The notes: a model not told the origin generated them from the sequence alone. A stretch of 64,000 bases of DNA from Paragordius varius (GCA_964247055.1 OZ176050.1:12896001-12960000); one strand, 5' to 3'; positions 20,091 to 39,691 are shown, counted from the stretch's first letter. Numbers and translations: made by a program.

Positions 20091-23000
20091 ATGTCACGGA
20101 CTGATTGCATTGAAAATGTTGTTCTTGAAGGGAAAGCGTTTAAATATTTTAATGTACGGGAAAAATTAAAGGATATTAAAAATTTTGGTAAAAAATTTTT
20201 TTACTTATTATAGATACTTTGCCGTTTTCTCTCAAAATACTTCTTGAATCGTACGTTGTAAATCAAGAACACCAAAAAATTAATAGCGTCATTCATAATA
20301 ACAATAATTATTTTGGTTGGAAACCATCAAGAGTTTTATTTCAAGATTACATGTAAACAATTATGTATTAATATATAGGGGTCTACCAACTTTGATCAAT
20401 ATATTATCTCTTTTTGATGTCGACAATAAATTTTTATTGTGCTCTGAATTGGATTTTACCCTGGATTCTTTTTTGCAAATTGATTCGATTCAAAAGTTAC
20501 ATTTTTATTAATATTTATTTAGTTTGGAAAATCAGCTTAAGCTTGATATGATTGGGTTAAAAAATGGGTTACGTTCAGGAACCAATTCTACTTTAACAGT
20601 TAATTCATCATCACGTCGTTCCTCTCATTCTTCTGCGCATTCTTTTAGCAGCAAAAAATTTGGATATTATTCTAATCCAAATTATATGGCAGTACAACCT
20701 ACATTTGCAGCAATCGACAGTCAGGGGTGGCCTATGGTTTACCCTCCTGCATTTTATCAACCTTATAATAATAGTTATAATCCAAATAGTCCTTTAATGT
20801 TTCACCCCCCTTGTGGTTACCATGGATACGGAGGGGAAACCTATTTACCGGCAGTTATAGCGGTTGTACCACCACCCCTTGCGTTTCCTACCCAACCGCC
20901 CTACTCAATTAACCCTTTAAAATTAGCTGATGAATCATTTACCACAGATGATTATATTAAACAAGAGTTTCCTACCATCTCAGAAAAAAACGGTCCCCCA
21001 CATCGAATTGTAAAAAGTAGTTTTACACCCACACCTAGTCAAAAGCGAATTGGAAATGGTTCTAATGTTTCTGAAAAGCCGAATGATTGTAAGTCATGTA
21101 TATTATATCAAACTTTTTTTAAAACAAAATTAACTTTTTTTGTATCTTAATATTTCTTTATCAATAAATAGGTGATACTAATCTAAAACGCTTTGTCGAA
21201 ACTTGCTATTGTTTGGGCAAGAAATACGATGCAAACATATTGAATAACCGTTTTGGCAAAAATAAAATGTCTGTCGTGGCGGAAAAAGTCCACGAAAATA
21301 ATGGAGTTGATGAAATTATCGATGATTTGACAATTGTAGAGTCTTCACATCAAACCAATAATTTGACAAAAATGATAAATAATGATAATGATGATGGTAA
21401 CTCTTGTTGTATAATATGTGATGCCCCACCAGCTTCAACTCATTCAAAGCGGCATATAGTCATGTGTCCAGCTCATAATTTACCCACTGAAAAGTATTTT
21501 TTTCGTTCTTTTTACTAAATATTTAGGCATATTTTATCAAAATTGTTATTTTACTACAGGGAATGACAATATTTTGTTAGCGTTTGAAACAAAAGCTTGC
21601 CATTATTTCTATTTTATACGTGGGCTTTGAGAATGTTTTTGTTAAAATATTATTGGTATGATTTTTATTTCAGATTAATATTTTATAATAATCAATATCC
21701 AAACTTTCATATTTTTTGGACTGCCATATTTTAACGTTAACTCTCGAGACTGTGTTAAATGCAGGGTTGTTCTTGAAAACTAGAAATATTATAAATATTA
21801 ATCTATCCATACGAACATATGTGGAAAATATTAACTAAAATTGCGTTATTATATATTTAAAAGATTTTTAGCATATATTTTGCGATAAGTCATTAACATA
21901 TTTTATATTTTATTGCCAAAAACCCGTTTAATAATCATATTTTACTCTTTTTAAATTATTTTTTGCTATTCACAATTTATTTTACTTAAGTTCAAGTTAA
22001 TTATGAACCTTTACAGTAAAATATGTGCATATAACTCTAAATCTATATATAAACGCGCACAAGATAAGAATTATTGAAACTTAGGCCTTTATTTGCAAAA
22101 ATTTTGTCATAATATTATAAAAAAGCCAAAAGAACAAGAAATTAATTTATGTATTTATCAAATACCTTCATTTGTATAAAAATGCAGTATACGGCTTTTT
22201 GCATATTTTACCTGTTAGCATTCTATTTATATATAACATATTTATATTTATTTCAAGACATCTAAAAATAGTTTTTATTTATAAATTATCTATTTATATA
22301 TCTATCTTGTAACTCTCTTACATAAGAACATACATTTTAACATATGCATATGAAAAGGCGAACAAATATACATTAGCAATTTGGATTAAAATTTTTAGAT
22401 GAAATAAACTTATAATACCAATGATGTTTGATTAATGATGATAACTTATGAACATTTTAGTGTTTTATAACTTTGACCTAAATGTATATATGCTTAATTC
22501 AAATTTTGTTACACAATAAACAAATTTATCATAAATTCCTTTTAAAATGTTTGAATTAGATTTCTGATTTAACAATTTATATTTTTGTAATTTCGATATA
22601 AATGATTAATTTTGGATTTTGTCCGTTGACTTTGTTTTATAATTAAACGTTTCTGTCAATGACATCATTAGAGTTTTGTCTAATTGAAACAACTGCTTAC
22701 TTTCTACAGTAAAAACTGAAATTATACGGACAAAACGGAAAAATGTAAAGACAAATATTTTTTTCTAAGATACAATTATACTTTTTAAATCTGATTTATT
22801 TCAATATAACTCATTGTTAAAAATGGCAAAGTGTGAAATAGGGATATAAATTACTAACACAATCAATTCCATATTTTATTGTAACTAAATAGCTTATATA
22901 AGAAAAATTAAGGTTTATCAAAGCATGGTTGTCTTTTAGATAAATATTTGTCTTTATATTTTTACGTTTTGTCCGTATAATTCCAAATGCTGCATTTATA

Positions 23001-26000
23001 TCCGCATAATATCGGAATATGTTGTTTGTCTTATATATTATTAAGCAGACTCATTTTTAATTTTAATTATATAAAATAGTATAAAGAAAGTCCTTAAAGA
23101 AATAAATATAGGAGTCCAAGAATAGAAAATTCGGAGACTAACCACTGTGGATTTTTAAATATTATTATTAAGTTTTATCTTATGTTGTGTTTATATGTCT
23201 TGTATTATTTTAGTGCCGAAACAATTTTACGGGCACACGTGCTGGAATTCGAACGAAATCGTGAACAATTGACCTTTCTCAAGGTAAACTCAGAAATAAA
23301 TTATTGATCTGATTTCTTAAAATAAGTAATGATGACAGAATTTTATTTTGAATAAACTTTTTTATTTTTACTATAATATTAAATTACTCTTTTTAATTAA
23401 TATCTTTTTTGCCTTTTTACTCATATATACCTTAAATTCTTTAAGTAAAGACCTGGCTTAGCAACTAAATTTTTCATCTACACTTTATCTTAAAAAACGC
23501 TTTATAATCATAATTGGACAGACTGACCAAATTTTACGAATCCTTTATTTAATCGGTATTCAAATTATCATTTTATACATTTTTTTACACTTTTAGTGGT
23601 TTTCTCAAACAGCTTTTCCCAACGTTCGTATAACACCACCCGGTTGCAGCCAATCTCAATCTCTTAGTCTAGAATTCTTGGCTAGGTTTATTGTGAAAAC
23701 AGCAGCCCAGTATGCAAGAAAAAGCGTAGAAAAAACTGATGAAGAAACTCCCATGATGATAAGATTAGATAATTTGTGTGGAACTGACATACATATACCC
23801 ATGATTAATGGATTGGGAATACTGTCATATTGTAATGAATTTTAATCTTTTTAGATGAATTTTTCTTTTTTTCTAGTTCTAGTACAGTATAAAAGATTCT
23901 GGTCAAATTTTGTTTAACACCCATTATTCTGTTTTAGTATTTGAGAAAGTATTAATTAAGAAATTTTTGACACAAAGTTATATTTCATTATAATTGTTAA
24001 ATGATTGGAATTACTCATTTAAGAACCGTTGTTCGGTATATAAATCTATTTTAACACCCATTATTCCGTTTTAGTATTTGAGAAAGTATTAATTAAGAAA
24101 TTTTAGACACAAATTTATATGCCATAATATAATTGTTAATTTATTGAAATTACTCAAAGAACCGTTGTTCGATCTAAAATCTATTTTAAGACACAATCTT
24201 ATGTATATATGTTTACCAAATTAAATAAATATTCTTTGAATGAAGTTATAGATAATTTACTTATTTTTATTTAAACATATAGGCACAAGTGGGATTGAAT
24301 GTCAAAATGTTATGTTGGGCCATTCTATACCCTTTCCCACCTCATATAATTTCGGCACTTTAGACAATAATAATCAGGATGAATTAATATTACAGGATTC
24401 TATTGTGGGTGTCCGTTTAGACTTTAGCAATAAGGATAAACCATTTAATCAATATGTTACGACGACAGATATTGTCCTACATATAACTAAGGTGGTTTTT
24501 TTATCCTAATTTTAAACCTAAGAAACCAATTATTTAATAAAGGATATAATCTTTGGAGTTTATGTGCTGAAAAGAAAGTCTCTGGGTAAAATTTTATTTT
24601 AACAAAAAGAAATGGTTGAAATAGGTTTACTTATTATTGTTATATATACCATTTAAATTCAAATTCACCCTTAATTAAAATATATGATTTTTAAGATTAA
24701 AAATTACCTATATTTTTATATATTTTAAAAAAATAAACATTTTGTTTTAAATTAAAATAATAAAAAATAATAAACTATGCCATAATTATATATTACATAT
24801 TAATAATGAGAATGTTAGTTCGAAAACACTTAATTTATTTTTCGGGTGAATTTGAATTCTTTAAGGGTGAATTGGAACTGTAAATAGTATATTTAAGTAA
24901 AATATTTAGAATCCATAACTTTTTTATATAATTTGGTTTCTCTTAATCAAACTTAGTGTTTTTTCTGATAAATTGTTTTAACATTTTGGTAATAAACGAG
25001 TTAAATATGCCGTTTTTTCACATTCATCAACTGTATAAAACTCTGTTCTTTTTAATTATATAAAAATATTTACTTCATATAATATTTTCAAAATTTTTTA
25101 TTTTTTTTTATAAAAAGGCACTTCGAAATGCCAATGAAGATATTAGAGGCAGGATTTGTGAATTTTACGGTCCTGGGCTTGTGCATTTAACCATTCCTGA
25201 ACGGCTAGCCATTGCCAATATGTATGGGGAGTATGGGGCTGTCCTAGCTTATTTCCCATTTGATAACACAACGTTTGAATACATTCTTGCCCTCAATACC
25301 CATACATCGAATCCGGGTAGGGCAATTTTTTTTATCTAAAACCTATAATAAACCCCCCTTAGTAAGGTAGATCGACCCCTTTCTAATAAGCTTTTATAAT
25401 GGCTTTTCCAGCATCATTTAAGGCTTTTTATGAGTAAACAGCGCTAATTAAATTAGCTTATGTTGATTGATTTGCACTTTTTCCAATATTTTTAAAAAGT
25501 GTATTTATTTTTAAACAATTGAATATATTCTTGCCCTCATACCCATATATCGAATCCGGGTAGGCACAGTTCTTTTTCTTTTGATAAATGAATATAGGCT
25601 ACCGATAGACACCCCCTTTAATGGGCTTTTTATATAAACAGTTTAATTAAGTATTTAATTAGCACTTTATTGATTATATTGCAATATTTTATTTTTAAAT
25701 ACGGTTTTTTGACGTGTAATACATTCTTGCCCTCAGTACTTATACATCAATTCCGGATTTTTAAATAAACAGCACTTATAAAATATTTTTCCTATTTTTT
25801 ATAAAGTCTAAATTATTTAGCTTTAAATCATTTAAAGTTAAGTAAGTTTGTGGGTCTTATGGAGCCCTTTTATTAACAAAAAAATAATGAAAAATATTTT
25901 TTAACAAAATATATCCAGAGAAAAATGAAAATAAATATTAATTTATTAATTATAAAAAATTTTTATTTCATATGAAAATGGGTCATGATACTGATTGTAT

Positions 26001-29000
26001 TTTTCAATATTAATCATTACAGTAGGGGAAGATTAGTTTTAATTTTTAGCTATAATTTACTATTTAAAAAATTATATATATATATATTTATATGTTGTTA
26101 TAGATTGTTCACTGGATGAAATCCATTTTATTAAACACTATTACAAAGTTTGTGGATTGTTCTATGATCCCTCTGATGAGGCACATAAAGAACCTATATA
26201 TAAAAAGGTAAACATATCTTAATTAATTAGTTTTAAATGCAGTCAAACCTATTTTAAATGTCCAGATTACACTTAACCATGTTTTACCCCTTGACTTTTT
26301 TGTACGATATGTATTAATAGGTTTAAAATCGATTTAGAATATATAACCCCATATTTTTAACTAACTTATGTATTTATATATATATATATATATATATAAT
26401 TCCACTTCAAGAGTGTCTTTTAACACTTCAAGTTGGTCCTTTAACACTTCAAATTGGTCCTTAAATTAACATTTTTATTTTGTTTTGAACTTTTATCAAT
26501 TAAACCATGTATAATTCATCTATCTTATCATTTTTAACTTATTAATTTAATCTATACTTTTAAATGAATATCTTTTTTATTTTAAATAAATGTTATATCT
26601 TATTAATTTTCTATATAATAATTATAAATATTGTTTGTGATTAATTGTATTTTTTTTCTATAATGCACCAATAAGTTCAAAATATGCCACTAAAATACTG
26701 CTATTATTTCAAAAAAAAGATCTTTTTGCCAAAATTGGTATGGCTTCGTGTTTTTACTAAAAGTGGTTTGCCTGTATGTATTTTTATTTTTGATATTATA
26801 GTTTTTTATCGATGGTTGCTAGGATTGGGTTTTAACCCAGTCAAAAAATATTAACCGCTCCGCTTATATATATTCACTTAATCGCGCTTACGATCAATCA
26901 ATAAAATATCAAAATTGGGAATGAATTTTATCAATAACAAATAAAACGAAAAAACTAATCGTATCAGTTTAACGGTGTGTTATTTAAAAATATATTATAA
27001 TGAATATTGAGATTAAGTTTCAGAATTTATTTTTTGCATTTTTAGAAACAAATTTATTTTCCCTATGTATGTTTAATATTGTCTGTATAAAAAATTTTGA
27101 TTAATTTTTTGTGAAGAACCACACTTTATATTGGGGTTATAATTCAGCAGCTATAATTAAATGAATTTGTGAATGTTTGATTACAAGTATTGTCAAACAT
27201 ATAAATAAAATTAAAATATAATCTTACAATTAAAGTAATTTTTATCCTATAACAAAGATTGCTTGTAGTATTGATGAAAATTCACTCTAAAAAAATTATT
27301 CAATTGTAGCTAAATTATAACCCCAATAAAAACACTTCAGCATAAACAAGATCTAAACATCTTAGTTATTCGACAAAAATTTAAGTTAAATAATTTGTAA
27401 TTTGATTATTGGTAAATTTACATAATTTCAATAGATATTAATTTCATTAATATGTTATTCATAATTTACAGGTAATCGATATCGATTTAAGCCAAGTTAA
27501 CACCTATCTTAGCGGACCGCATAAGGCTTCCGAAAAACTTGCATTTCACGGATCTCTGTTGCCAAATTCAGGAGATTTTACCAATCAAGATTGCGATCAT
27601 ACCCAACAAGAACAAGAAAAAATAATTTTGCCAAAAATGTAATTTATTTTTATATTTTCGTTGTAATTTTTCAAAAAATTTTTATAGGTTACTGTAGATG
27701 TAGATTATAATAATTGAAATTGTAAAAATTCATATTTAAATTTATTTCGATGTTTTATTTTATGGAATGTGTTTTTTTTCTGCAAAAATTTTATGACTTT
27801 ATTTAATGTGATAGGAAAATTAGATGACTAACATTTTGAATTTTGGAAAAATTTCTATGTTTTACAGATTATCTAATTACTATTGGTTTTATTTAAGGGC
27901 TTGGAACGGGCTCAAAAAAGTGGAACCGGAACCGCGTTGGTTCCTTAAAAATTTAGCGGTTCAAGAACCGGTTCCATTTTTGGTTATTGACTTTTGATTA
28001 AATGATTTGCAAAATTATTATAATAATACAACCAAAATATTAACAATTATAAATCAAACAATTTATTATAAATTGTTAAATGTATAATGAAAGAAATATA
28101 GGGTAGCTTAATAAATGTACCAAAATACAAAAATATAATGGGAAAATGTATAAGTAGGTATAAAATGAGAGGGAAATTAAGTGGCATCTAAAAAAATCTT
28201 TATTTAATTTTAAATTATGCACCAAGCAATTAGCTAATCAAACTGCTTCTCAAGTCTGAAAATAGAAAATTAAGGGTGAAAAAACTCCTTTTAACGAAGA
28301 CCTATATATACGAACATATGTATTATAAACTCGAATTACTATTAGTTTTTTAGAACAGCCGAGTTGTCCATAATTCAGAGCGTATTGCTACTATAATATT
28401 AGGCGCTTAGTTTTAGGTTTAAAGCTTAAGGTATGTAATATGTAGTGAAAATTATATGGGAACCAGTAATTAAGGGGTTGGAACTTCCATATCAATGGAA
28501 CCGGTTCTTGTTAAAATCCCAGGAACCGGGTTCCGGTTCCAAGCCCTGTTTTATTTATTTAAATTACAATTTTGATAACCGTTTTAATTATAGAAAACTG
28601 CAAATTAGGCTTGTTTAAATATTTTGAAATCGTTTTTCATTCCATTTTTCAATTTTCTATAATATACTTTTTGTTTTTGACTTAGAAATGGACACATTGC
28701 TTTAGCCAGTATAACAAGTTGTAATAATGCCACGAATGGTAGTGTTATGTTAGCCGCTGGTCTCTTAGCCAAATCAGCTCTGGAAAAGGGATTGTTACGA
28801 AAGGTTTGAGCAATTTTTTATTTGTGTTTTGAATTTTATTTTTAAAATTAGGGTTTTTTTGAAATCCAATTTATAAATAGGCCAAAATTTTTAAAATATT
28901 GTTTTTTTAATAATACCTAGTATATGATTAGCATTGAGCTAAAATAATGCTTTATCTAAATATAGGATGAGTTTTTTAAAAAATTTTTGAAATAGGGATT

Positions 29001-32000
29001 ATGTTGATAAAAATAACTTTATGATCTGTAAACTGATTTGTTAATAAATTTAATTTTTTTTTACATTATGCCAATTTAGATTATAAATAGGTCGTTTTTC
29101 GGTGCGGTTTTACATTTTAAACAATAGCATTTCATCACATTGTTCGAATATTTATCCATCTGAAATATTAATATATAAAAAGTAATCAGTTTTAATATTA
29201 GAGTATGCATTTTAATGGTGGCTTATACACTATAGTAGGGCATGCAACACAATAGTATGTGGAAAAGAAAGGAGAAAATCGTTTATTTAACATTTTGTTG
29301 TTTTTTCCATACACTACTGTCTGTTGCAAATTACCATACTATAGTGTGAAATAAGCAACCATTAAAATGCATTAAAAGAATGTTGACCTTTAACAATATT
29401 TTCCTTTTGTTTATTTAATTATGGAGAAAATTAGTTTTATAAACATACGCTACTACTGTATTACCAATTGGCCACAATAATAATCTAAATAAACCTGTTT
29501 AAATGTGCATACTGTATATATTTTACGTTCGCTCATAACATATTTAAGCACATTGCCGAAAATTCTACCATTGAATTACGGTTGGAACCAGGAATATCGG
29601 GTTATTGGTGTTTAGCGGAAAGCTTAACCCTACCATACCTGACTAAATTGGGGTTTGATATTACCGGTTTTGGGTGTAGTCAATGTCAACATCAGTCACA
29701 AATTGATTTACAAACTAAAAATCGTAATAATGGGAATTCTTCTACTGCTGATAATAACTATCATCTAAACGAATCTCTTGCCCAATTAAGTGATATAATT
29801 TCCATATTTTTTTTAAAAAATTGTTTAATTCTTGATAATATATTGATTCCATTGTTTGAAGGCGTGATCCTTCACATGTCCAAACAATTTAAGTCCTTAC
29901 CCTTTAATAAAAAAGAAAAAAGAGACTCTAAGCTATATATATATATATATATATATTGATTAAATTGTTTAGTTTGAATAGCAATAATTAAATTTACCAT
30001 AACTACTATAGTAATATTTGTCTAATATAAAATTAAAATAATAATTTTTGTCGATGTTTTGGGGTTATCTTTTATATTTATTAAAAGTCTTGTTATACAA
30101 GTCAAAAATTATATACCTTAAAAGGTTATGTATGATATTTTATTAACGTATACTTTTCAAAATTATTAGATCTTAATACCAATATTGACAATGATGTTTA
30201 TCGTTTAATGGACGCTTGGCGAAAAAAGTTTGATGGATATTCAGCAATAAATAATTCGCAAATTAGTCACTCCAAGGATAGTGTTGGATTAGGTCTGTAT
30301 ACTATAACAAGAATTTTAAATTTAAAAATCTTTTTTTTACTATATTTATATTTGTTAGATTTTAGGATTTTTTCTTGTTTCATTATCATATGATATATCT
30401 ACCAACTTGTTAGTATAAACCAATTGTAAAGATTAAGTTGGCTTTGTTATTGTAATAAATATATTTTCTTTGAATTTTCCAATAAATAAAACATTTTTTT
30501 AGTGTATTACATAATTTTTTAAATTTTAGATAAAAAATCACATATAATTTTTATTCCTGACTATTCTTTCTTTGGACAAATATTATTTTTAACCTAAAAA
30601 ATTTTTTTTTCGTGTTTTAATTCAATATATTTTATAGATATATACGGTGTTATATCTAACAATCGAAATTTTGAGGGTCGAACAAAACCCCACCCAAAAT
30701 CGACGTATTTGTGTTCTCCACTTTTAGTGATAGCTTATGCCTTGGCAGGAAATATTTATCATGATTTTGAAAAACAACCCTTAAACTCAAAAGATTCAAG
30801 AAAAGGTAATTTTAAAGACTTTTGTTATATATTTTGCTTAAAATTGTCTTTTTTAAAATTAAATATATATATTGTGTATAATAAATTAGTTATTTTTTAT
30901 ATCATTTCTATGCGTTTAAATATTAAATTTGGCTTAAATATTGTCATGGTTTTACCATTGTCTTATATTTATAATTCTATTAACGATAAAATCTTTTGCG
31001 ACTTTTGAATTATATTACGTAGTTTATGCTTTATTCCAATTTTCAGGGAATTTTAGCATATTATACCATTCTAAACATCAGTGTATCGTATTTTGAGGTT
31101 ATTAAAGTTTATATATATTCTGCGTGCGCATTTTAGGCAACATTGTTAACCAAACCGACGTCTCAAAAAACTCTGATTGCATTTATCTTGCTGACATTTG
31201 GCCTAGTAGAGAACAAATTAAACATGTTGAAAATACGATAGTTATGCCTGCCCTTTACGATAACCTAAGGAAACGGTATTGTGGATTTTATTATATTGCA
31301 ATTATAATTCAACTAAAATTATATATGAATTTATTGTAAATTTTCGATATTACTACTAGTAATCTTTGTTAAACGTAAAAAAATATATAATTAAGATATA
31401 AACTAATAAATTTAAAGTAAAAAGTAGTAAAAATAATTAATGAGATATGAAACTAAAAAACATGTGTGTATTGTTATTAAGAAAAAAGTTTGTAATATTC
31501 ATTTATATTGTTGAGATCTTTTTACCTAATTTTGTGAAAAAATAATAAATTTTAATTTGCCAAATTTTTTAAGGAGAAAAAAGGTGTAATTAAAATTAAT
31601 TAGTGTATATTTAATGCATTTTTTGCCTTATAGAATCCGTGAAGGAGGTAATGAAGATTGGCGTGAATTAAGGGTGGAACCTTTAAATTCAAATTCTGAA
31701 AACTTTAATCCCTCTTCGATTTGTATTTCCTATCCTTGGAATCGATATTCAACTTGCCTTAAACCAAACCCAAACTTTATGATGAATGCAAAACTAAACG
31801 ACGATTTAAAAGATCATTATTCAGTTATAGCTGTGTTTGGAGATAATGTTAGCACAGATCATATCTCACCTGCCGGGAGTATAGCACGTCAAAGTTGTGC
31901 TGCACAATATTTAATGGCTCAGGGGTAATTTATTATGTTACAGTAAAATATTTTAAGTGAAAAGTGTCACACATCAATATAAATTTACTGCATTGGATGA

Positions 32001-35000
32001 ATATTTCACAAATATATAATAAGTTTTTATGTAACTTGTAATATTTTATTATGTTCTTTACCATTAGAGGCTCGAATTTACCACCTTGTATGTAACAATT
32101 TGTATTGATTGTATAGGTAAAAAATTAAAACAATAATTAAAGACCAAGAAACAAATATTATAATAAAAGCATAAACCTTGGCTTTTAAATAAAATTTATT
32201 ATTTTGTGTTGCCGAAATTGGAATAGAGATAGATCACACCAATTCTTATATATTATAAATGGAAAATTGAAAAGAATATAGTTTTATGGGTAAAAATATT
32301 ATTCTTATATTTTATTTATAAACGATTATGTTTAGGCTAAAACCGCGTGAATTCAATTCGTATGGTAGTCGACGCGGTAATTATGAAGTTATGTTACGAG
32401 GTATATTTGCTAATCCCCGTTTAATTAACTTATTGGTTGATCGAAATGTTGTTTCTCCCAAAGGTAATGGCATTTTTTGATATTTTTTATTCAATGAAAT
32501 GATAAATAAAAATGTGAAAGTTTACTATGTATAACAAAACGCAGATTTTTTTAGTTGATTTGAACTGTTTTTACTAATGTACAATATGGGTATAGGTAAA
32601 AGTTTGCAAATTAAAAGTTGAATTTTTTTATATAGAGATTTAATTTAAAGAATGTAAAAGGCCCACATTATCATTATAAATCCTTAATTTTTATATAATC
32701 AATTGGTTAGCCATTTTTAACCCAACTATAAGAAATAATTATGTATAAAAATATGGTGTTAGCTCCAGTAACGCGAATTGCGACTTTATATTAAAAACCA
32801 AAGCTATACATATTTATTGCCTCAATTTTATCTAATTTACTGTTTGACAAATAAATCAAAATTCTGTTCTTTTTAAATAAACTTTATTTAATATATATTT
32901 GTATATATATATAGTACCTCTTAACTATACGCGAGTCCCAACAATGATTAACATTGATAGAGATGATAATAAATTTTCTGATGGTGTTAATGAGTACAAA
33001 CGAACTAACAATCGCAAAGATTGTGAACAATATGTATCGATATATGAAGCCTGTTCTACTTATCATAATTATAATGTTGAACGTTGTAAGTATTTTACAC
33101 AATTTTTTCGGTTTATTTTAGTGTTGGATATACGTGGCCGAAATTTAAAATTTTAATTTTCAAATTATTAATAATAAAGGTAAACCTATTGTGGATCTGT
33201 TGTTGGTGAGCTTTTATAGGAAAATTTCCTCCACTCGGATATGTCGTGGGCTTTTGAGATAGATTTTGCAGTTGCATTTTAGAAAGTGATAAAATTTCGT
33301 CTACCGAACGAATACCTCTTAACATAATATCTTTTTTCAAAGAAGTCCTCGAATAAAGTGTCGAAAGTAACCTTTATCATTATACCCCGAAGCGTTGTTT
33401 GTGCGTTGATTTTATTTACGATGTCGATGTTCTTAACTTTGTTCTTCCATGTTATACTAAATATTTTTCTCCACCAAAACATAAAGCGTTTATCCTTTTC
33501 TCGTCACCACTTTTAATGGACCAGCTTTCACAGCCGTATAACATAATCGGAAATAATAATGCGTTTATTAGTCGGATTTTTGTTTTTAGATTTATTTCAT
33601 GAGATTTCCATATCTTGTAGTGTGAGGTTAGAGCGCATTGGCGATAGCTATGCGTATTTATTTTTTAGGAACTGGAGCTCGATATGTTGATATGCTTTCG
33701 AGGTATGTATATTCGTTGACCAATTGAATCGTTTCGTTATAACTTTAAAGCGAGTCATAAAAATGGGAGTTGATATGGAATATTTTAGTTATTTTGAGGT
33801 TTAATGTTAGATTATATTTTTTGCACAAAAGTTCGGAGACTGTTTTCAAGGTTTGTTTGTTAGTTGGCTAAGATTAATGACCCCCCCATTTTTAGGCAGA
33901 TTTAGATCCCTCATGATTCATTCCAAATTTAAATGTTGAACAACATGGGGGATAAAATGCAGCTTCTAGAAGGTCGGGCCATGCGGGGTGTTAATTAATA
34001 GGTAGGAGTTGGAGTATATGGATTTAATTAGTTTGATTAAGTGATCGAACTCCTGTTTGTTTAAGGGCCTTCCAGAGAATATCAAGTTGAACGGTATCGA
34101 AAGCTTTAGAGAAATCCATGAAGCGTAGCTCATTTTTAAATTCACAGTTTTTTTCCATTATCCATCTAATGTATGAGATCTTGTCTCGGCATCCTTGCAC
34201 AAACTAATGAACCACTAATATTAAAAGAAGAAATCGAATGGGTCCTGAGGCACTCATTAACCGGCAAAGCAGAGGGATTCAATGACATCCCTACAGAGCT
34301 ACAAAGGCACATTCCCATAAAATTAATTCATTCATTATTCGAAAAAAAATCTTCAGTGAGGCAACATTTACGGCAGACTAAAACAAATCACTAGTGGTCC
34401 CGATATTCAAAAAGGGCGATCTTAAATTATGTGAAAACTACCACACAATAGCATGAATTAATCAAATCTCAAAAGTGTTTTTAAAAATAATACAGAATCG
34501 TCTACAACTATATGCCAACCCGGAAATCTCAATGACACAGGCGGGTTTTAGAGAAAAAAGAGGATGCCGAGGCATGATCTCAAACATTAGGTGGATAATG
34601 GGAAAAAACTTTAAATTCCAAAATGAGCTACACCCATTCTTCGTGGATTTCTCCAAAGCCTTCGATACCGTTCAACACGACATTCTCTGGAAGGCCCTTA
34701 AACTAATAGGAGTTTCCGATCACTTAATCAAACTAATTAAATCCATTCACTCCAACTCCTACATATCACTTAACACCCCACATGGCCCGACCTCTTGGAT
34801 TTTTGAACATATTATTCTTCATGTTGTTCATCATATATTTGGAATGTATCATGAGGGATCTAAATCTGCCAGGAATAAAAGTAGGGGGTCACACTCTGAC
34901 GACTTTTCACTACGCAGACGACACGGTAATCTTAGCAAATTCACAAACAAACCTTGAAAACAGTCTCCGAACTTTTATAAATGTGTGGAAAAAATATAAT

Positions 35001-37219
35001 TTAACATTAAACCTCAACGAAACTAAAATATTGGATATCAACTCTCCTCATTCCTATGACACGCTTTGGATTAGTAGTCTACAAATGCACATACCTTGGA
35101 AGCATTATCAACAACTTAAGCTCCAGTTCCCAAGATATAAGAAGACGCATAGCTATCGCCAAATGCGCTCTAGCCCCACACTACAAGATATGGAAATCTC
35201 ATGACATAACTCTTAAAACAAAAATCCGACTACTAAAGGCATTATTATTTCCTATCATGTTATACGAATGTGAAAACTGGATTATTAAAAGTCAAGACGA
35301 AAAAAGAATTAACGCTTTTGAAATGTTTTGCTGGAAAAATACTTAGTATAACATGGAAGGACAAAGTTAAGAACACCGACATCGTAAACAAAATCAACGC
35401 ACAAACAACGCTTCGGGGTAAAATAATAAAACAAAAATTCGGTTACTTTGGACACATTATTCGAGGACATTCTTTGGAAAAGGATATTATGTTAGGAAAA
35501 AAATGGCAAAAAAGGACTAAGACATATTCGTTGAATAGACGAAATTTTATCCTTTCTAAAATGCCACTGCAAAAACTACCTCAAAAAGCCTACGACAGAA
35601 CCGAGTGGATGAAGTTTTCTTACAAAATCGCTAATGGTCGATAACCGACCACTACAAGCTCAACAATGGGACCTTTGTACATTTGCTTTTTGCGCGAATG
35701 AATGTCTCTATCTAGGTTAACACAGATTGTATTATAATGAGATTCTTTGTCAGATCTAATGTAGTTTATTGTAGTTCATTATTAATATTTTTGTACTCAG
35801 GGGGAGTGCCCTTGGATTTTGCTATTTTTCCCTGATCAATTATGTGTAAGCTTTGTTGTGATATGGTGGATTTTTTGTTTTTGATTCGGGCAGGCGGTAT
35901 AGTCTCTTTGCCTGTTTCGGTGGTAATTTTGTAAATAGTTGACCGAAGGTCATCAGTGTTTAATGTTTTGTAGTTTAAGGATTCGAATTTATTGTTAAGG
36001 ATTAAAGCGAATTCGGCAGGTATTAAATTATAGTCAATTTGGTTTTGCAAAGTGGAAGGTTATGATTTGAATCACAGTCAGCGCTCACGTATCATCGGAT
36101 GTTCTGGGATGAGCTTTTGTATCTTTGCATGCCCATTTATATTTACGGCACGGTGAGTCCAAGTGTAAAGGCGTCTAGTAGGCTGCTTGAAAAACGAATT
36201 GGCTATGAAGAAATTGTGCTCTTGACAAAATTCAATTAGCCTTTCCCTCTGACCTTGTCTGTTTTATCGTTAGCTATGATGGCGTTAAAACCACCGATGA
36301 TGAAACTTATGTCTTTTTTGGATGTTTCTCTGAGAGACATTTGTAAGTCATTATAGAACTTTTCGCATTCCTCTTCGGGTGAGACACTCGAGAGGGGCAT
36401 AGACTTAATATGTTATAACTTTGGGTTTCGAATTCGTAGAGATATGATTCGATCGGAGATAGATCTATATATATATCGGTATGTTTGGCGAGATAATTCG
36501 ATATTAAAAACCACATCCATTTCGTTTGAACTCACCGCCTGAGTTATAAAACGAGTAATTGTCGAATATTTTGTGTGAGTTATGTTGCATATGAGTCTCC
36601 GACAGTCCTACCACATAAATGTTTAAACGTCACATCTCTCGAATTATTATATCCAATTTATTATCTAAACGGCCAAGTGTATTCCATGTCGCCATGTTTT
36701 GTGTTAGGTTATAGCAAATTCGTTTTTCAAGCAGCCTAATAGACGACCTTGGACCTCACCGTGCGCTAAATATAGGAACCAAATAGATTATATATTGGGC
36801 ATGCAAAGTTACAAAAGCTCATTACATCCGATGCTATGCGAGCGTTGACCGTAATTTAGATCTTAAACTTTTGATGGCCAAAATGAAAATAAAGTTACAA
36901 TTTCCACCCACATCAACATAATAACTTTTGCAAAAACAAATTGCCGAATTTGTTTTAACCCTTAACAAAAAATGCTAATTCTTAAAACCAATTATTTACA
37001 AAATTACCACCGGAACAGCCAAAAAGATTATACCGCCAGCCCCAATCAAAAACAAAAAAAGACGATATTACCGATAAAATATAGTTTAAGTTTTAATTTA
37101 AATGACAAAACATATAATCTAAATGACAACTATTTTTTTATAAAGATTTCTGTAATATGATTACAATTATAAAATACCAATTTCTTCTATTCCTTACTTT
37201 GCAACCCAAAACGTTAAGT

Positions 37220-37252
<33 letters not shown>

Positions 37253-38887
37253 TAATCAAGGTTGTAAAATTATGGTTTTGTTATTTAAAAAAATGTTTAT
37301 TTTATAATCTACGTTTTTTTATTTTACTGCAATATATTTAATAAATACCTAGCTGGCAATTTTATAATAATGGCTGGACAAAATTTTGGTACTGGTTCTT
37401 CGAGGGATTGGGCTGTTAGAGGACCACGTATGCTTGGAATCAATGTACGTTAGTTTTTTATGCCTTTTTTGATCTTTTTAAATTTTTGATTTAAATTAAT
37501 CATATAAGGTTATTTTTATGTTTTCATTACTATTAAAAATATAAAGCAGTTTATTAAAACATAACACTAAACAGTAAATAAATGAAAACATAAAAGGAAG
37601 TTATCGTGCTTTTCCAAAAAAACACTTTTTACTTTATACTTTAATTTTTAGTTTATATTTTAATTTTAGCTGATTTGCAATAATAATACGCATTAGTATA
37701 CGCATTTTCGATCTATGAATATTATATTCTGAATGCATTTTTTCAATATAGTAATAAAGTAATAAATATTCTAAAATAATACATTTGAACACTAATAATT
37801 GTGTTTAACCTCAAAAAAATAATTTCTGTTTTTTCTTTCTTTTTATAGGTTATTGTCGCGAATTCATTTGACCCATCTTACAGAGCCCAATGCGTTTATG
37901 AAGGAATCTACCCATTTACTTCTACTCATGAATTGGGTTATGATAAAACTAAAATTTTAAGTTTGCTACACAATAAAAAAGCTGGCAACACAAAAAGGCT
38001 CACCGGTGTTGGTGAGATTACATGGATTATAAAGAGAAAAGAAATAACTACAGAAACTAGAAATGCGCATTTTACAACGTGTCCAACGTACATTTTTGAG
38101 GTAAGGATTATTATATTATGCCAATTTTTATGAAACAATTTTTGTTTAATATTTTTATTTTTTATGGATTATATTGTATCACTATTTTGAATATCAAAAA
38201 TAATGAAATTATACGGACAAAACCCAAAAATATATAGATAAATGTTTTTCATAAAAGGCAACCATGCTTTTAACTTCATTTTTAAAAAGATAACTCGTTG
38301 TTTTAAATTGCAAATTTTAAATTATATATGTATATTGATTACACAATTATTTATTTATTTACAATTGTAAATAAATAGCTTATATGAGAAACAATAAGGT
38401 TTTAAAAAGTATGGTGGTCTTTTATAAAAAAAATATTTCTCAATATATTTTTACTTTTTGTCCGTATCATTACAGTTTTTAAATGAAATTAAGGATATCT
38501 TATAGGGATACATATTATATTAAAATATTTTATAAGGGTTTCTTTTATTTCGTTAATTATAAATTATCTTTCTTTGTAAATATCTTTGTTTAATACCTAA
38601 TAGATTTTAAAATTGATATTAGACCTTTCTTTTATAATTGCTACTAATTTTAGCATTTCAAAATGTTTTCATGTTTTTTTTAAACAAATATTTATATTTT
38701 TATATAGGCGGTCTGGTTTAAAAATGTCCACACCTCTCAAATGGAGTCAAATTCCCTCACTTCGCTTTTATATTCGTTTGAAGCAAAACTCCAAGTTTTT
38801 GATGAGGAAGAATGGTTACTGTTATCACACGGTGGAACATTAGCTTATAAATTAAAAATGGCACAAAAAAGCACAAATATGGAATAA
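20091..38887 (+). CDS. IREB2: Iron-regulatory protein / cytosolic aconitase family, IRP2-like architecture, 22 exons, ~1375 aa
   Basis: Exons 20091-20187 (alternative ATG 20016), 20214-20352, 20379-20495, 20523-21088, 21172-21493, 23214-23283, 23597-23831, 24283-24491, 25118-25316, 26104-26207, 27472-27638, 28686-28803, 29549-29789, 30170-30292, 30638-30805, 31137-31275, 31634-31924, 32336-32463, 32915-33085, 37353-37444, 37849-38100, 38708-38887; total 4128 nt, in frame. Motifs [76 protein letters not shown]. Family assignment is secure; IRP1 versus IRP2 orthology is inferred. Confidence 0.9.
22707..22992. mobile_element. MITE family B (TIR CAGTAAAAACTGAAATTATACGGACAAAAC, Tc1/mariner-type ends)
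   Basis: ~50-bp inverted termini; four copies in the window; IRP intron. Confidence 0.85.
23935..24190. repeat. Direct tandem duplication (~137 bp x2) in an IRP intron
   Basis: TTAACACCCATTATTC.GTTTTAGTATTTGAGAAAGTATTAATTAAGAAATTTT..AAGAACCGTTGTTCG occurs twice. Confidence 0.9.
24649..24886. mobile_element. MITE family C copy
   Basis: Same TIRs and core; IRP intron. Confidence 0.85.
25275..25740 (+). repeat. Three tandem copies of the IRP exon-9 3' end plus intron start
   Basis: AATACATTCTTGCCCTCAATACCCATACATCGAATCCGG|GTAGG at ~25278, ~25522 and ~25718. Confidence 0.88.
27060..27350. repeat. Dispersed repeat family D (imperfect inverted repeat)
   Basis: ACAAAGATT(A/G)CTTGTAGTA..AGCTAAATTATAA is also present at ~3180-3270 and ~6015-6095, with an inverted partner at ~27125-27190. 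Confidence 0.55.
27895..28548. mobile_element. hAT-type non-autonomous element with 8-bp TSD
   Basis: TIR (C/A)AGGGCTTGGAAC / GTTCCAAGCCCTG; TSD TTTTATTT at 27887-27894 and 28549-28556; multiple subterminal GGAACC(GG) motifs; IRP intron. Confidence 0.9.
29202..29372. mobile_element. Palindromic MITE family A
   Basis: Arms ATGCATTTTAATGG..CACTATAGT / ACTATAGTGTGAAATAAGCAACCATTAAAATGCAT. Shares TTGTTGTTTTTTCCATACACTACTGT with 57104-57264 and ~955-1160. Confidence 0.75.
33150..34198 (-). mobile_element. Degenerate RTE LINE RT/3' fragment in IRP intron 19
   Basis: The minus strand reads [19 protein letters not shown] and 3' RTE motifs, with frameshifts. It is homologous to the adjacent plus-strand copy. 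The left boundary is approximate. Confidence 0.85.
34199..35670 (+). mobile_element. Degenerate RTE LINE reverse transcriptase (frameshifted)
   Basis: [37 protein letters not shown] and YECENW are spread over ORFs 34173, 34475, 34782, 35056 and 35270. Confidence 0.92.
35680..36640 (-). mobile_element. RTE LINE AP-endonuclease/linker fragment
   Basis: The minus strand reads [29 protein letters not shown] and QNQIDYNL, followed by linker. Confidence 0.8.
36690..36900 (+). mobile_element. Second, inverted endonuclease fragment of an RTE LINE
   Basis: The plus strand reads [25 protein letters not shown], the inverted homologue of ~36060-36250. Confidence 0.65.
38196..38482. mobile_element. MITE family B copy (opposite orientation)
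   Basis: TGAAATTATACGGACAAAAC ... TTTTGTCCGTATCATTACAGTTTT; last IRP intron. Confidence 0.8.
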
Positions 38888-39173: not shown

Positions 39174-39438
39174 TAGTAAAAACTGAAATTATACGGACAA
39201 AACGTAAAAATATAAAGACAAATATTTATTACCAAAAAACAACCATTCTTTTTTTTAACCTTCATTTTTGCCATATTAAGCTATTTAATTACAGTTGTTA
39301 TATATAAAATTGATTGTTGCACCAATTACATATAAATTTTATAAATTGCGATTTTAAAAAAATATGGGGTTTTCTTTTAGAAAAAAATATTTGCCTTTAT
39401 ATTTTTACATTTTGTCCGTATAATTCCAATTTTTACTA
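39174..39438. mobile_element. MITE family B copy
   Basis: Same TIRs; downstream of the IRP stop codon. Confidence 0.85.
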
Positions 39439-39691
39439 TATATTGTGTTTTTGTTTCCAATCACCAATATTTTTTACATGTATTTTGTGTGTCCCAAGTC
39501 ACATAGAAATAAATTTATAACTTAATCTTTTTTTTAGCTTTTTTTGGTTATTTATATAATATATATATATATATATATATATCATAGCATAATAAAATAC
39601 GCCGAGTTGATTCCATCTGATTGAAAGCATTTTTTGTCACGGATTCAATGCAAAAAACCGTTATTTTGCAGTTAAAGATATTTTAAATAAA

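Follow-up and report, generated by a model that had tools for sequence, protein, structure and literature searches.

In reviews, an insert of 73 residues is treated as the feature that separates vertebrate iron regulatory protein 2 (IRP2, IREB2) from IRP1, and this insert, known as the iron-dependent degradation domain, has an exon of its own and appears to be unstructured (PMC3048577). For about 25 years it has been argued whether the insert is an iron sensor, a heme sensor or simply dispensable. Here we analyse a stretch of 64,000 nucleotides from the horsehair worm Paragordius varius (GCA_964247055.1 OZ176050.1:12896001-12960000; the window, with positions counted from its first base), in which a gene for a protein of the IRP/cytosolic aconitase type carries two additional exons (exons 4 and 5, together the cassette). 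In our judgement, these are very probably the worm version of an ancient optional exon of animal IRP genes, the same exon that vertebrates fixed as their IRP2-specific insert of 73 amino acids.

The cassette sits where the vertebrate insert sits, i.e. in the linker of domain 1, and shares with it a Cys-Pro-x-His motif that is followed by six residues and then by the conserved ...EFxRNRE, a cysteine pair upstream of this motif, an exon-encoded and (as predicted) unstructured character and a host protein which, by prediction, is likewise a non-enzymatic IRP. There are differences, too. The worm cassette spans two exons and 296 residues, against one exon and 73 residues in vertebrates, so a preliminary description of this DNA was right to see a fourfold-expanded, low-complexity insert. 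Furthermore, NAPNPGGG is missing, CPAH replaces CPFH, and the cysteine pair is a CxxC with a 15-residue spacer as opposed to the CxxxC with 22 residues in vertebrate IRP2.

Exons 4 and 5 are coding sequence

Together, exons 4 and 5 amount to 888 nt or 296 codons (split ones counted) and lie in frame between exons 3 and 6. The frame is kept by both jointly and by neither singly, and skipping of both also keeps it: the same Asn codon (aa|t) is restored, and the linker has its canonical length of 14 residues. Given the local stop frequency (0.082 per codon), open frames as long as theirs have chance probabilities of 1e-7 (188 codons) and 1e-4 (107 codons), and their GC contents (0.38 in exon 4, 0.34 in exon 5) resemble those of the other exons and not the background of ~0.25, the window as a whole having ~25% GC. 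Low-coverage DNA reads from a related organism (run X3) cover exons 4-5 at single-copy depth. Differences within the single-copy part of that run cluster in intron 2 (8 in 26 nt), between exons with hardly any change, and in the first 35 nt past position 21493, and exon 4 shows three listed substitutions together with an in-frame deletion of 6 nt. Exons 4 and 5 are coding sequence, not chance frames, and the long open frames, the exon-like GC, the in-frame indel and the divergence of intron versus exon argue that this coding sequence has stayed under selection. The two extra exons named in the preliminary description are thus borne out, as is its insert of ~295 residues that runs from Ser-rich via Pro/Tyr-rich to Cys-containing sequence and ends in CPxH: the 296 codons close with CIIC-x15-CPAH-x6. 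Taken out of context, the exons are inconspicuous. A Pfam search with exons 4, 5, 7 and 16 gave no family, and exon 5 alone produced chance-level matches only in the Protein Data Bank (PDB) and no match in a protein collection, where the search covered a limited window of lengths and the proteins of this genome seem to be missing, so that this blank says little.

The end of the cassette is in register with human IRP2

When a 42-residue peptide across the junction of exons 5 and 6 was compared with 177,635 PDB sequences, the sole match was human IRP2 (6vcd_A; E = 4.4e-4), in an ungapped alignment that places worm CPAH over CPFH and whose human side reads ILCPFHLQPVPEPETVL. CPAH is in exact register with the CPFH or CPYH of human IRP2 and of nearly all invertebrate cassettes (see below), Ala as the third residue being unique among the taxa compared. 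In an anchored profile alignment, CIIC, 15 residues upstream of CPAH, aligns to the CxxC of the invertebrate cassettes. These in turn lead back to vertebrates: the amphioxus cassette forms a single-domain alignment across the entire human IRP2 insert, with NxPNPGGG and CPFHxQP in common.

An optional cassette from corals to amphioxus

A phmmer search of the whole library with conserved exon 16 led to an animal-type protein (P0096), which as a query retrieved 120 animal IRPs, and cluster look-ups added more (comparison set: loci L001-L006, proteins P0184-P0329). Between DHSxQxD and EFxRNxER, the linker measures 14 residues in 97 of the 120 proteins and 41-77 residues in 15 proteins, all from invertebrates. 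At least 30 of the retrieved invertebrate IRPs carry a cassette at exactly the same insertion point, always after the fourth linker residue. It is present in scleractinian corals (two species of Porites, Montipora, Orbicella, Oculina), the priapulid Priapulus, many bivalves and gastropods, a chiton, the annelids Paralvinella and Owenia, the brachiopod Lingula, the nemerteans Lineus and Tubulanus, the bryozoan Watersipora, a sea urchin, a starfish and amphioxus. The isoforms seen of Xenia, Hydractinia, Rhopilema and Cloeon are without it. Cassette-bearing examples are the X1 isoforms of Priapulus caudatus (XP_014666450.1), Branchiostoma lanceolatum and Strongylocentrotus purpuratus (XP_030855986.1), and for seven species, isoforms X1 and X2 are annotated whose only difference is the cassette.

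The cassettes nearly always begin with PNPGGG (degenerate DPGGN in corals) and usually contain a CxxC, which is absent in corals, altered in several molluscs and a CxC in some gastropods. They end in CPFH or CPYH plus exactly six residues, one exception being X1 of Pecten maximus with CPGQ. PNPGGG and Cys-Pro-[FY]-His are the only deeply conserved elements. With these X1 cassettes of IRP/ACO1-type genes, the worm cassette has in common the insertion point, the phase 2-2 boundaries, the CxxC, the CPxH-plus-6 ending and a next exon that ends in phase 0. Unlike them (27-152 residues, a single exon, PNPGGG in nearly all), it is 296 residues long, split and lacks PNPGGG; next in length are Watersipora (152) and Tubulanus (75), both also expanded by Ser/Thr-rich sequence. 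The settings differ as well, since the hosts of X1 cassettes are catalytically intact and their cassette is annotated as optional, whereas the worm has a degenerate IRP with the cassette behind an intron of 27 nt.

The claim that such an insert is absent from IRP1 and aconitases therefore stands for vertebrates but falls for invertebrates, whose IRP/ACO1-like genes carry the optional cassette. Our literature search found no description of the invertebrate cassette as an ancient optional exon, its isoforms being visible in public annotation. It may be known informally, since these isoforms are publicly annotated and UniRef names both echinoderm X1 forms (including XP_030855986.1) 'Iron-responsive element-binding protein 2'. 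A region-restricted search of a 5.8-billion-sequence database with the amphioxus cassette returned only this cassette itself, the motif being too short for E-values to pass.

Exon boundaries are shared in position and phase

Exons were mapped at six loci (amphioxus, Porites, Solemya, Paralvinella, Priapulus and Watersipora). In all six, the upstream exon ends with '...R + ag|gt' in phase 2 within the fourth linker codon. Amphioxus, Porites, Paralvinella, Priapulus and Watersipora encode the cassette in one exon, which ends in phase 2 in the sixth codon past the His; for Solemya, matching flanking exons were recovered, but not the cassette exon itself. Where mapped (Porites, Solemya, amphioxus, Priapulus), the next small exon ends with '...LK|gt' in phase 0. 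The worm junctions, 'caa aa|gt' at 20495, 'gaa aa|gt' at 21493 and 'aag|gt' at 23283, have the same positions and phases at all three sites, and the cassette junctions of the five taxa with a mapped cassette exon read '..ag|gt' before and '..tg|gt' or '..gg|gt' after the cassette. Two features set the worm apart: its 83-nt intron within the cassette is seen in no other taxon with a mapped cassette exon, and its upstream intron measures 27 nt as opposed to roughly 0.85-9 kb elsewhere.

Anchored profile tests favour common descent

Homology predicts a fixed register, so we chose as the correct design an anchored one, in which the flanks are part of the profile and shuffled or rotated inserts serve as controls. 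Anchored in this way, the worm insert scored 55.5 bits with a profile of 15 sequences and 56.5 bits with one of 21, as against 40.2-41.5 +/- 2 bits for shuffled inserts; the observed score was reached by 1 of 20,000 shuffles and by none of 295 circular rotations (p ~5e-5), and the alignment runs unbroken from the CxxC via CPxH into the core. A CP.H in register occurred in 27 of 300,000 shuffles and, when combined with the upstream CxxC, in none of 300,000. Shared ancestry fits far better than convergence, because the worm insert agrees with the cassette of many invertebrate IRPs and of human IRP2 in its insertion point, its exon phases, the upstream CxxC and the register of CPxH plus six residues, and because the anchored profile is significant. 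Of the two origins that the preliminary description had offered, a pre-vertebrate IRP2 module keeping both Cys and His gains from the same-site cassettes with the same intron phases in invertebrates, and a convergent one becomes unlikely.

The host protein probably binds RNA only

In the worm protein, H126S, S127F, H178Q and S206I (IRP1 numbering throughout) affect positions at which the 11 comparison IRPs do not vary, with the exception of P0096 (H126N), and that we take to be catalytic residues of aconitase. All three Fe-S cysteines (C437, C503, C506) are kept. So are R269, S371, K379, S681, P682, R713, R780, D781 and W782, presumably the IRP1 contacts to the loop and the bulged C of the iron-responsive element (IRE), while T438N and K732L differ. 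Given that four invariant catalytic residues are replaced, the host is most likely an RNA-binding-only IRP, a prediction from residue comparison. With IRP1/cytosolic aconitase (ACO1) it shares fold-wide homology, the Fe-S cysteines, the IRE-contact positions and, if the cassette is skipped, the linker length; the replaced catalytic residues, many Asn-rich insertions and the cassette distinguish it from ACO1. The predicted loss of the enzyme involves other residues (H126S, H178Q, S206I) than in vertebrate IRP2. A tree of 29 IRPs and AcnAs, composed without vertebrate IRP2, leaves the worm protein unplaceable, its end branch measuring 10 changes per site. IRP2 orthology is not needed to explain the worm cassette, however, because the cassette occurs in unduplicated invertebrate genes.

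P0096 itself (European Nucleotide Archive, 903 aa), an animal protein of IRP type, has no cassette and is degenerate at catalytic positions (H126N, N509S, R699L, S778P).

Gene model and features of the locus

The gene model (Table 1) was built from stop-to-stop frames, tblastn with an aconitase (P0019) and frame-consistent GT..AG junctions. P0019 matches 13 exons in order, matches in the PDB are IRP2 and IRP1, and identity to animal IRPs is 38-39% over ~826 aligned columns. All 19 introns of the gene are GT..AG and range from 26 to 4267 nt, which does not agree with the 'minimal-intron' animal of the preliminary description.

Table 1. Features of the IRP-like gene and its cassette in the window
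Feature	Position	Strand	Remarks
IRP/cytosolic-aconitase-like gene	20091-38100	+	20 exons, open frame of 1275 codons; start codon (20091) and C-terminal end uncertain
Intron 1	20188-20213	+	26 nt
Intron 2	20353-20378	+	26 nt
Exon 3	20379-20495	+	ends ...QIDSIQ + 'aa', phase 2 within fourth linker codon
Intron 3	20496-20522	+	27-nt micro-intron GT..AG (gttaca...tttag) between exon 3 and cassette
Exon 4	20523-21088	+	cassette part 1; Ser-rich, then Pro/Tyr-rich low-complexity sequence; 188 codons plus split codons
Intron 4	21089-21171	+	83 nt (gtaagt..atag), interrupts the cassette
Exon 5	21172-21493	+	cassette part 2; ends ...CCIIC-x15-CPAHNLPTE + 'aa', phase 2
CIIC (CxxC motif)	21408-21419	+	further Cys codon just before (21405-21407)
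CPAH (Cys-Pro-x-His)	21465-21476	+	six residues ahead of cassette end
Intron 5	21494-23213	+	1720 nt; high-copy repeat at ~22620-23012
Exon 6	23214-23283	+	small conserved exon; first base completes the split Asn codon; ends in phase 0

The repeat in intron 5 (22620-23012) reaches a depth in the thousands in run X3, with many rearranged joints, and remnants of open reading frames that resemble it lie near 38100-38400 and 39200-39520. Intron 18 (4267 nt) contains frameshifted reverse-transcriptase fragments at 34170-35641 (Pfam RVT_1, two pieces in different frames) and looks like the site of a decayed retroelement. Relative to all other IRPs, the coding sequence has Asn-/Asp-rich insertions within exons 8, 13 and 18 (24330-24400, 29700-29789 and 32915-33040), as is typical of very AT-rich genomes. 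The donor of exon 13 is uncertain (29789 versus 29723).

Discussion

What might the cassette do? Our best guess, by analogy with IRP2, is that its Cys-Pro-x-His motif may act as a switch, responsive to heme or metal, of an IRP that binds RNA only. The cassette would probably form a disordered surface loop on domain 1, in which Cys-Pro-x-His and the nearby cysteines might bind heme or metal and so couple heme, iron or redox state to the stability or the partners of the protein, as has been proposed, yet disputed, for IRP2; the Pro/Tyr/Ser-rich addition may serve as a flexible spacer or an interaction region. In an AlphaFold model of Priapulus X1 (residues 1-440), the cassette had pLDDT values of 27-49, which, since the truncated construct lowered confidence in the flanks as well, tells us only that there is no confident fold. 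As in heme-regulatory (Cys-Pro) motifs, the worm cassette has a Cys-Pro in a putatively disordered segment along with a nearby His that could be a second ligand; different from them, the residue after the Pro is Ala and not the usual hydrophobic aromatic one. That the putative switch responds to heme specifically is possible, albeit a thought we entertain with somewhat more doubt than belief.

Instead, zinc or iron may be what the conserved Cys and His bind, these residues may work as a redox switch, or the loop with its Pro/Tyr-rich expansion may be a docking or condensate-forming region; in any of these cases it would be no heme sensor. We regard this as rather doubtful. It is true that a CxxC followed by a CxxH is a common metal-knuckle pattern and that the worm addition is of low complexity and rich in Pro, Tyr, Ser and Asn. 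In IRP2, direct iron binding at C168, C174 and C178 has been proposed (PMC2267205), heme being another proposed ligand of these cysteines, and the insert is required for an effect on tumour growth that is unrelated to known IRP targets (PMC3048577, PMC2854138). Against such a role, a report cited in PMC2267205 describes that IRP2 binds heme at C201, and the AlphaFold model shows no confident knuckle, although it carries no metal. Moreover, corals lack the CxxC and several molluscs have it in altered form, while Cys-Pro-[FY]-His is nearly invariant, which implicates the Cys-Pro motif itself. Two kinds of observation speak against any switch of the sort we favour: in cultured cells, IRP2 without its insert was still degraded when iron was replete, so that this iron-dependent turnover can do without it (PMC2267205, PMC3048577), and there are cassettes with an incomplete set of candidate ligands, those of corals without a CxxC and that of Pecten with CPGQ.

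Even with homology granted, the cassette may be mostly skipped or even a decaying relic, so that the main product would be a protein of canonical length (979 residues). This would be in line with the frame, the Asn codon and the 14-residue linker that skipping preserves, and with the optional status annotated in seven other species. Also, three putative RNA runs gave no contig on 20000-23900; as none of the exons examined there matched, conserved ones included, these runs are uninformative about skipping. We nevertheless consider a mostly skipped cassette unlikely in view of its two long open frames, exon-like GC, in-frame indel and intron-versus-exon divergence, and because intron 3 with its 27 nt, compared to kilobase-scale introns elsewhere, binds exon 4 closely to exon 3. 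This tie hints that the cassette is probably included constitutively or at least often.

Regarding origin, the insert could have arisen independently by exonisation within the same ancient intron, its CPAH resembling CPFH by chance or because selection converged on a heme-regulatory motif. Cys-Pro motifs are short sequences that evolve easily, and lineage-specific additions to this surface loop can be large, as Watersipora and Tubulanus show. A number of our own results weigh in the same direction and against inheritance. Only ~33 of the 296 residues, the last ones, can be aligned. PNPGGG is absent, and all frames of 20380-23300 are free of NPGG and PGGG. The third residue of the motif is Ala rather than Phe or Tyr, the spacer from CxxC to CP is 4 residues longer, and the whole-library search with exon 16 brought up distant aconitases only and hence no horsehair-worm relative of the gene. 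Without anchoring, a cassette-only profile scored -0.8 bits against the 296-residue insert, a value reached by 67% of shuffles; the similarity of CPAH in a profile alignment, which the preliminary description had put forward as part of a test, is thus significant when the flanks anchor it and not significant for the cassette alone. What makes independent exonisation very improbable to us is that register, both phases and the upstream CxxC coincide to a degree that shuffling hardly ever (anchored score) or never (joint motif) reproduced, and that another ecdysozoan, Priapulus, has the cassette with the same gene structure, which renders inheritance the simpler explanation. Scarcely credible, finally, is a separate small gene nested in the IRP intron that runs from the ATG at 20548, 9 codons into exon 4, to a stop after 21516, 8 codons on if the donor at 21494 is unused, seeing that the end of exon 5 is homologous to that of IRP cassettes and sits on the conserved phase-2 donor, that the differences in the related organism begin directly after 21493, and that neither exon alone resembles any known protein or family.

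In corals and many bilaterians, the cassette is one symmetric (phase 2-2) exon in the intron after the DHSxQxD exon. If it was inherited, it would in the worm lineage have lost its PNPGGG start, added ~230 residues of Ser-rich and Pro/Tyr-rich low-complexity sequence and gained the 83-nt intron, with the upstream intron shrinking to 27 nt. One may go further and envisage, tentatively and with considerable reservation, that the common ancestor of cnidarians and bilaterians made two IRPs from a single gene by means of the optional cassette, that vertebrates split these forms between IRP1 and IRP2 and that the worm independently 'IRP2-ised' its gene by abolishing the enzyme, locking the cassette to exon 3 with a 27-nt intron and growing a disordered heme- or metal-sensing arm of ~300 residues.

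The worm copy is a previously undescribed, extreme variant of a known domain and, at 296 residues, the longest cassette seen. From corals to amphioxus, the exon is optional and its Cys-Pro-[FY]-His nearly invariant, and the motif has survived even in a worm gene that evolves very fast and has changed most of the remaining insert; together, these findings speak for selection on the motif over hundreds of millions of years. They also suggest that IRP1 and IRP2 divided between them two splice forms that existed already, a view that we met in no paper in our literature search. With this, the question of what the insert does becomes a comparative and testable one, namely which roles the two isoforms play in animals with one gene and whether heme binding is a conserved property.

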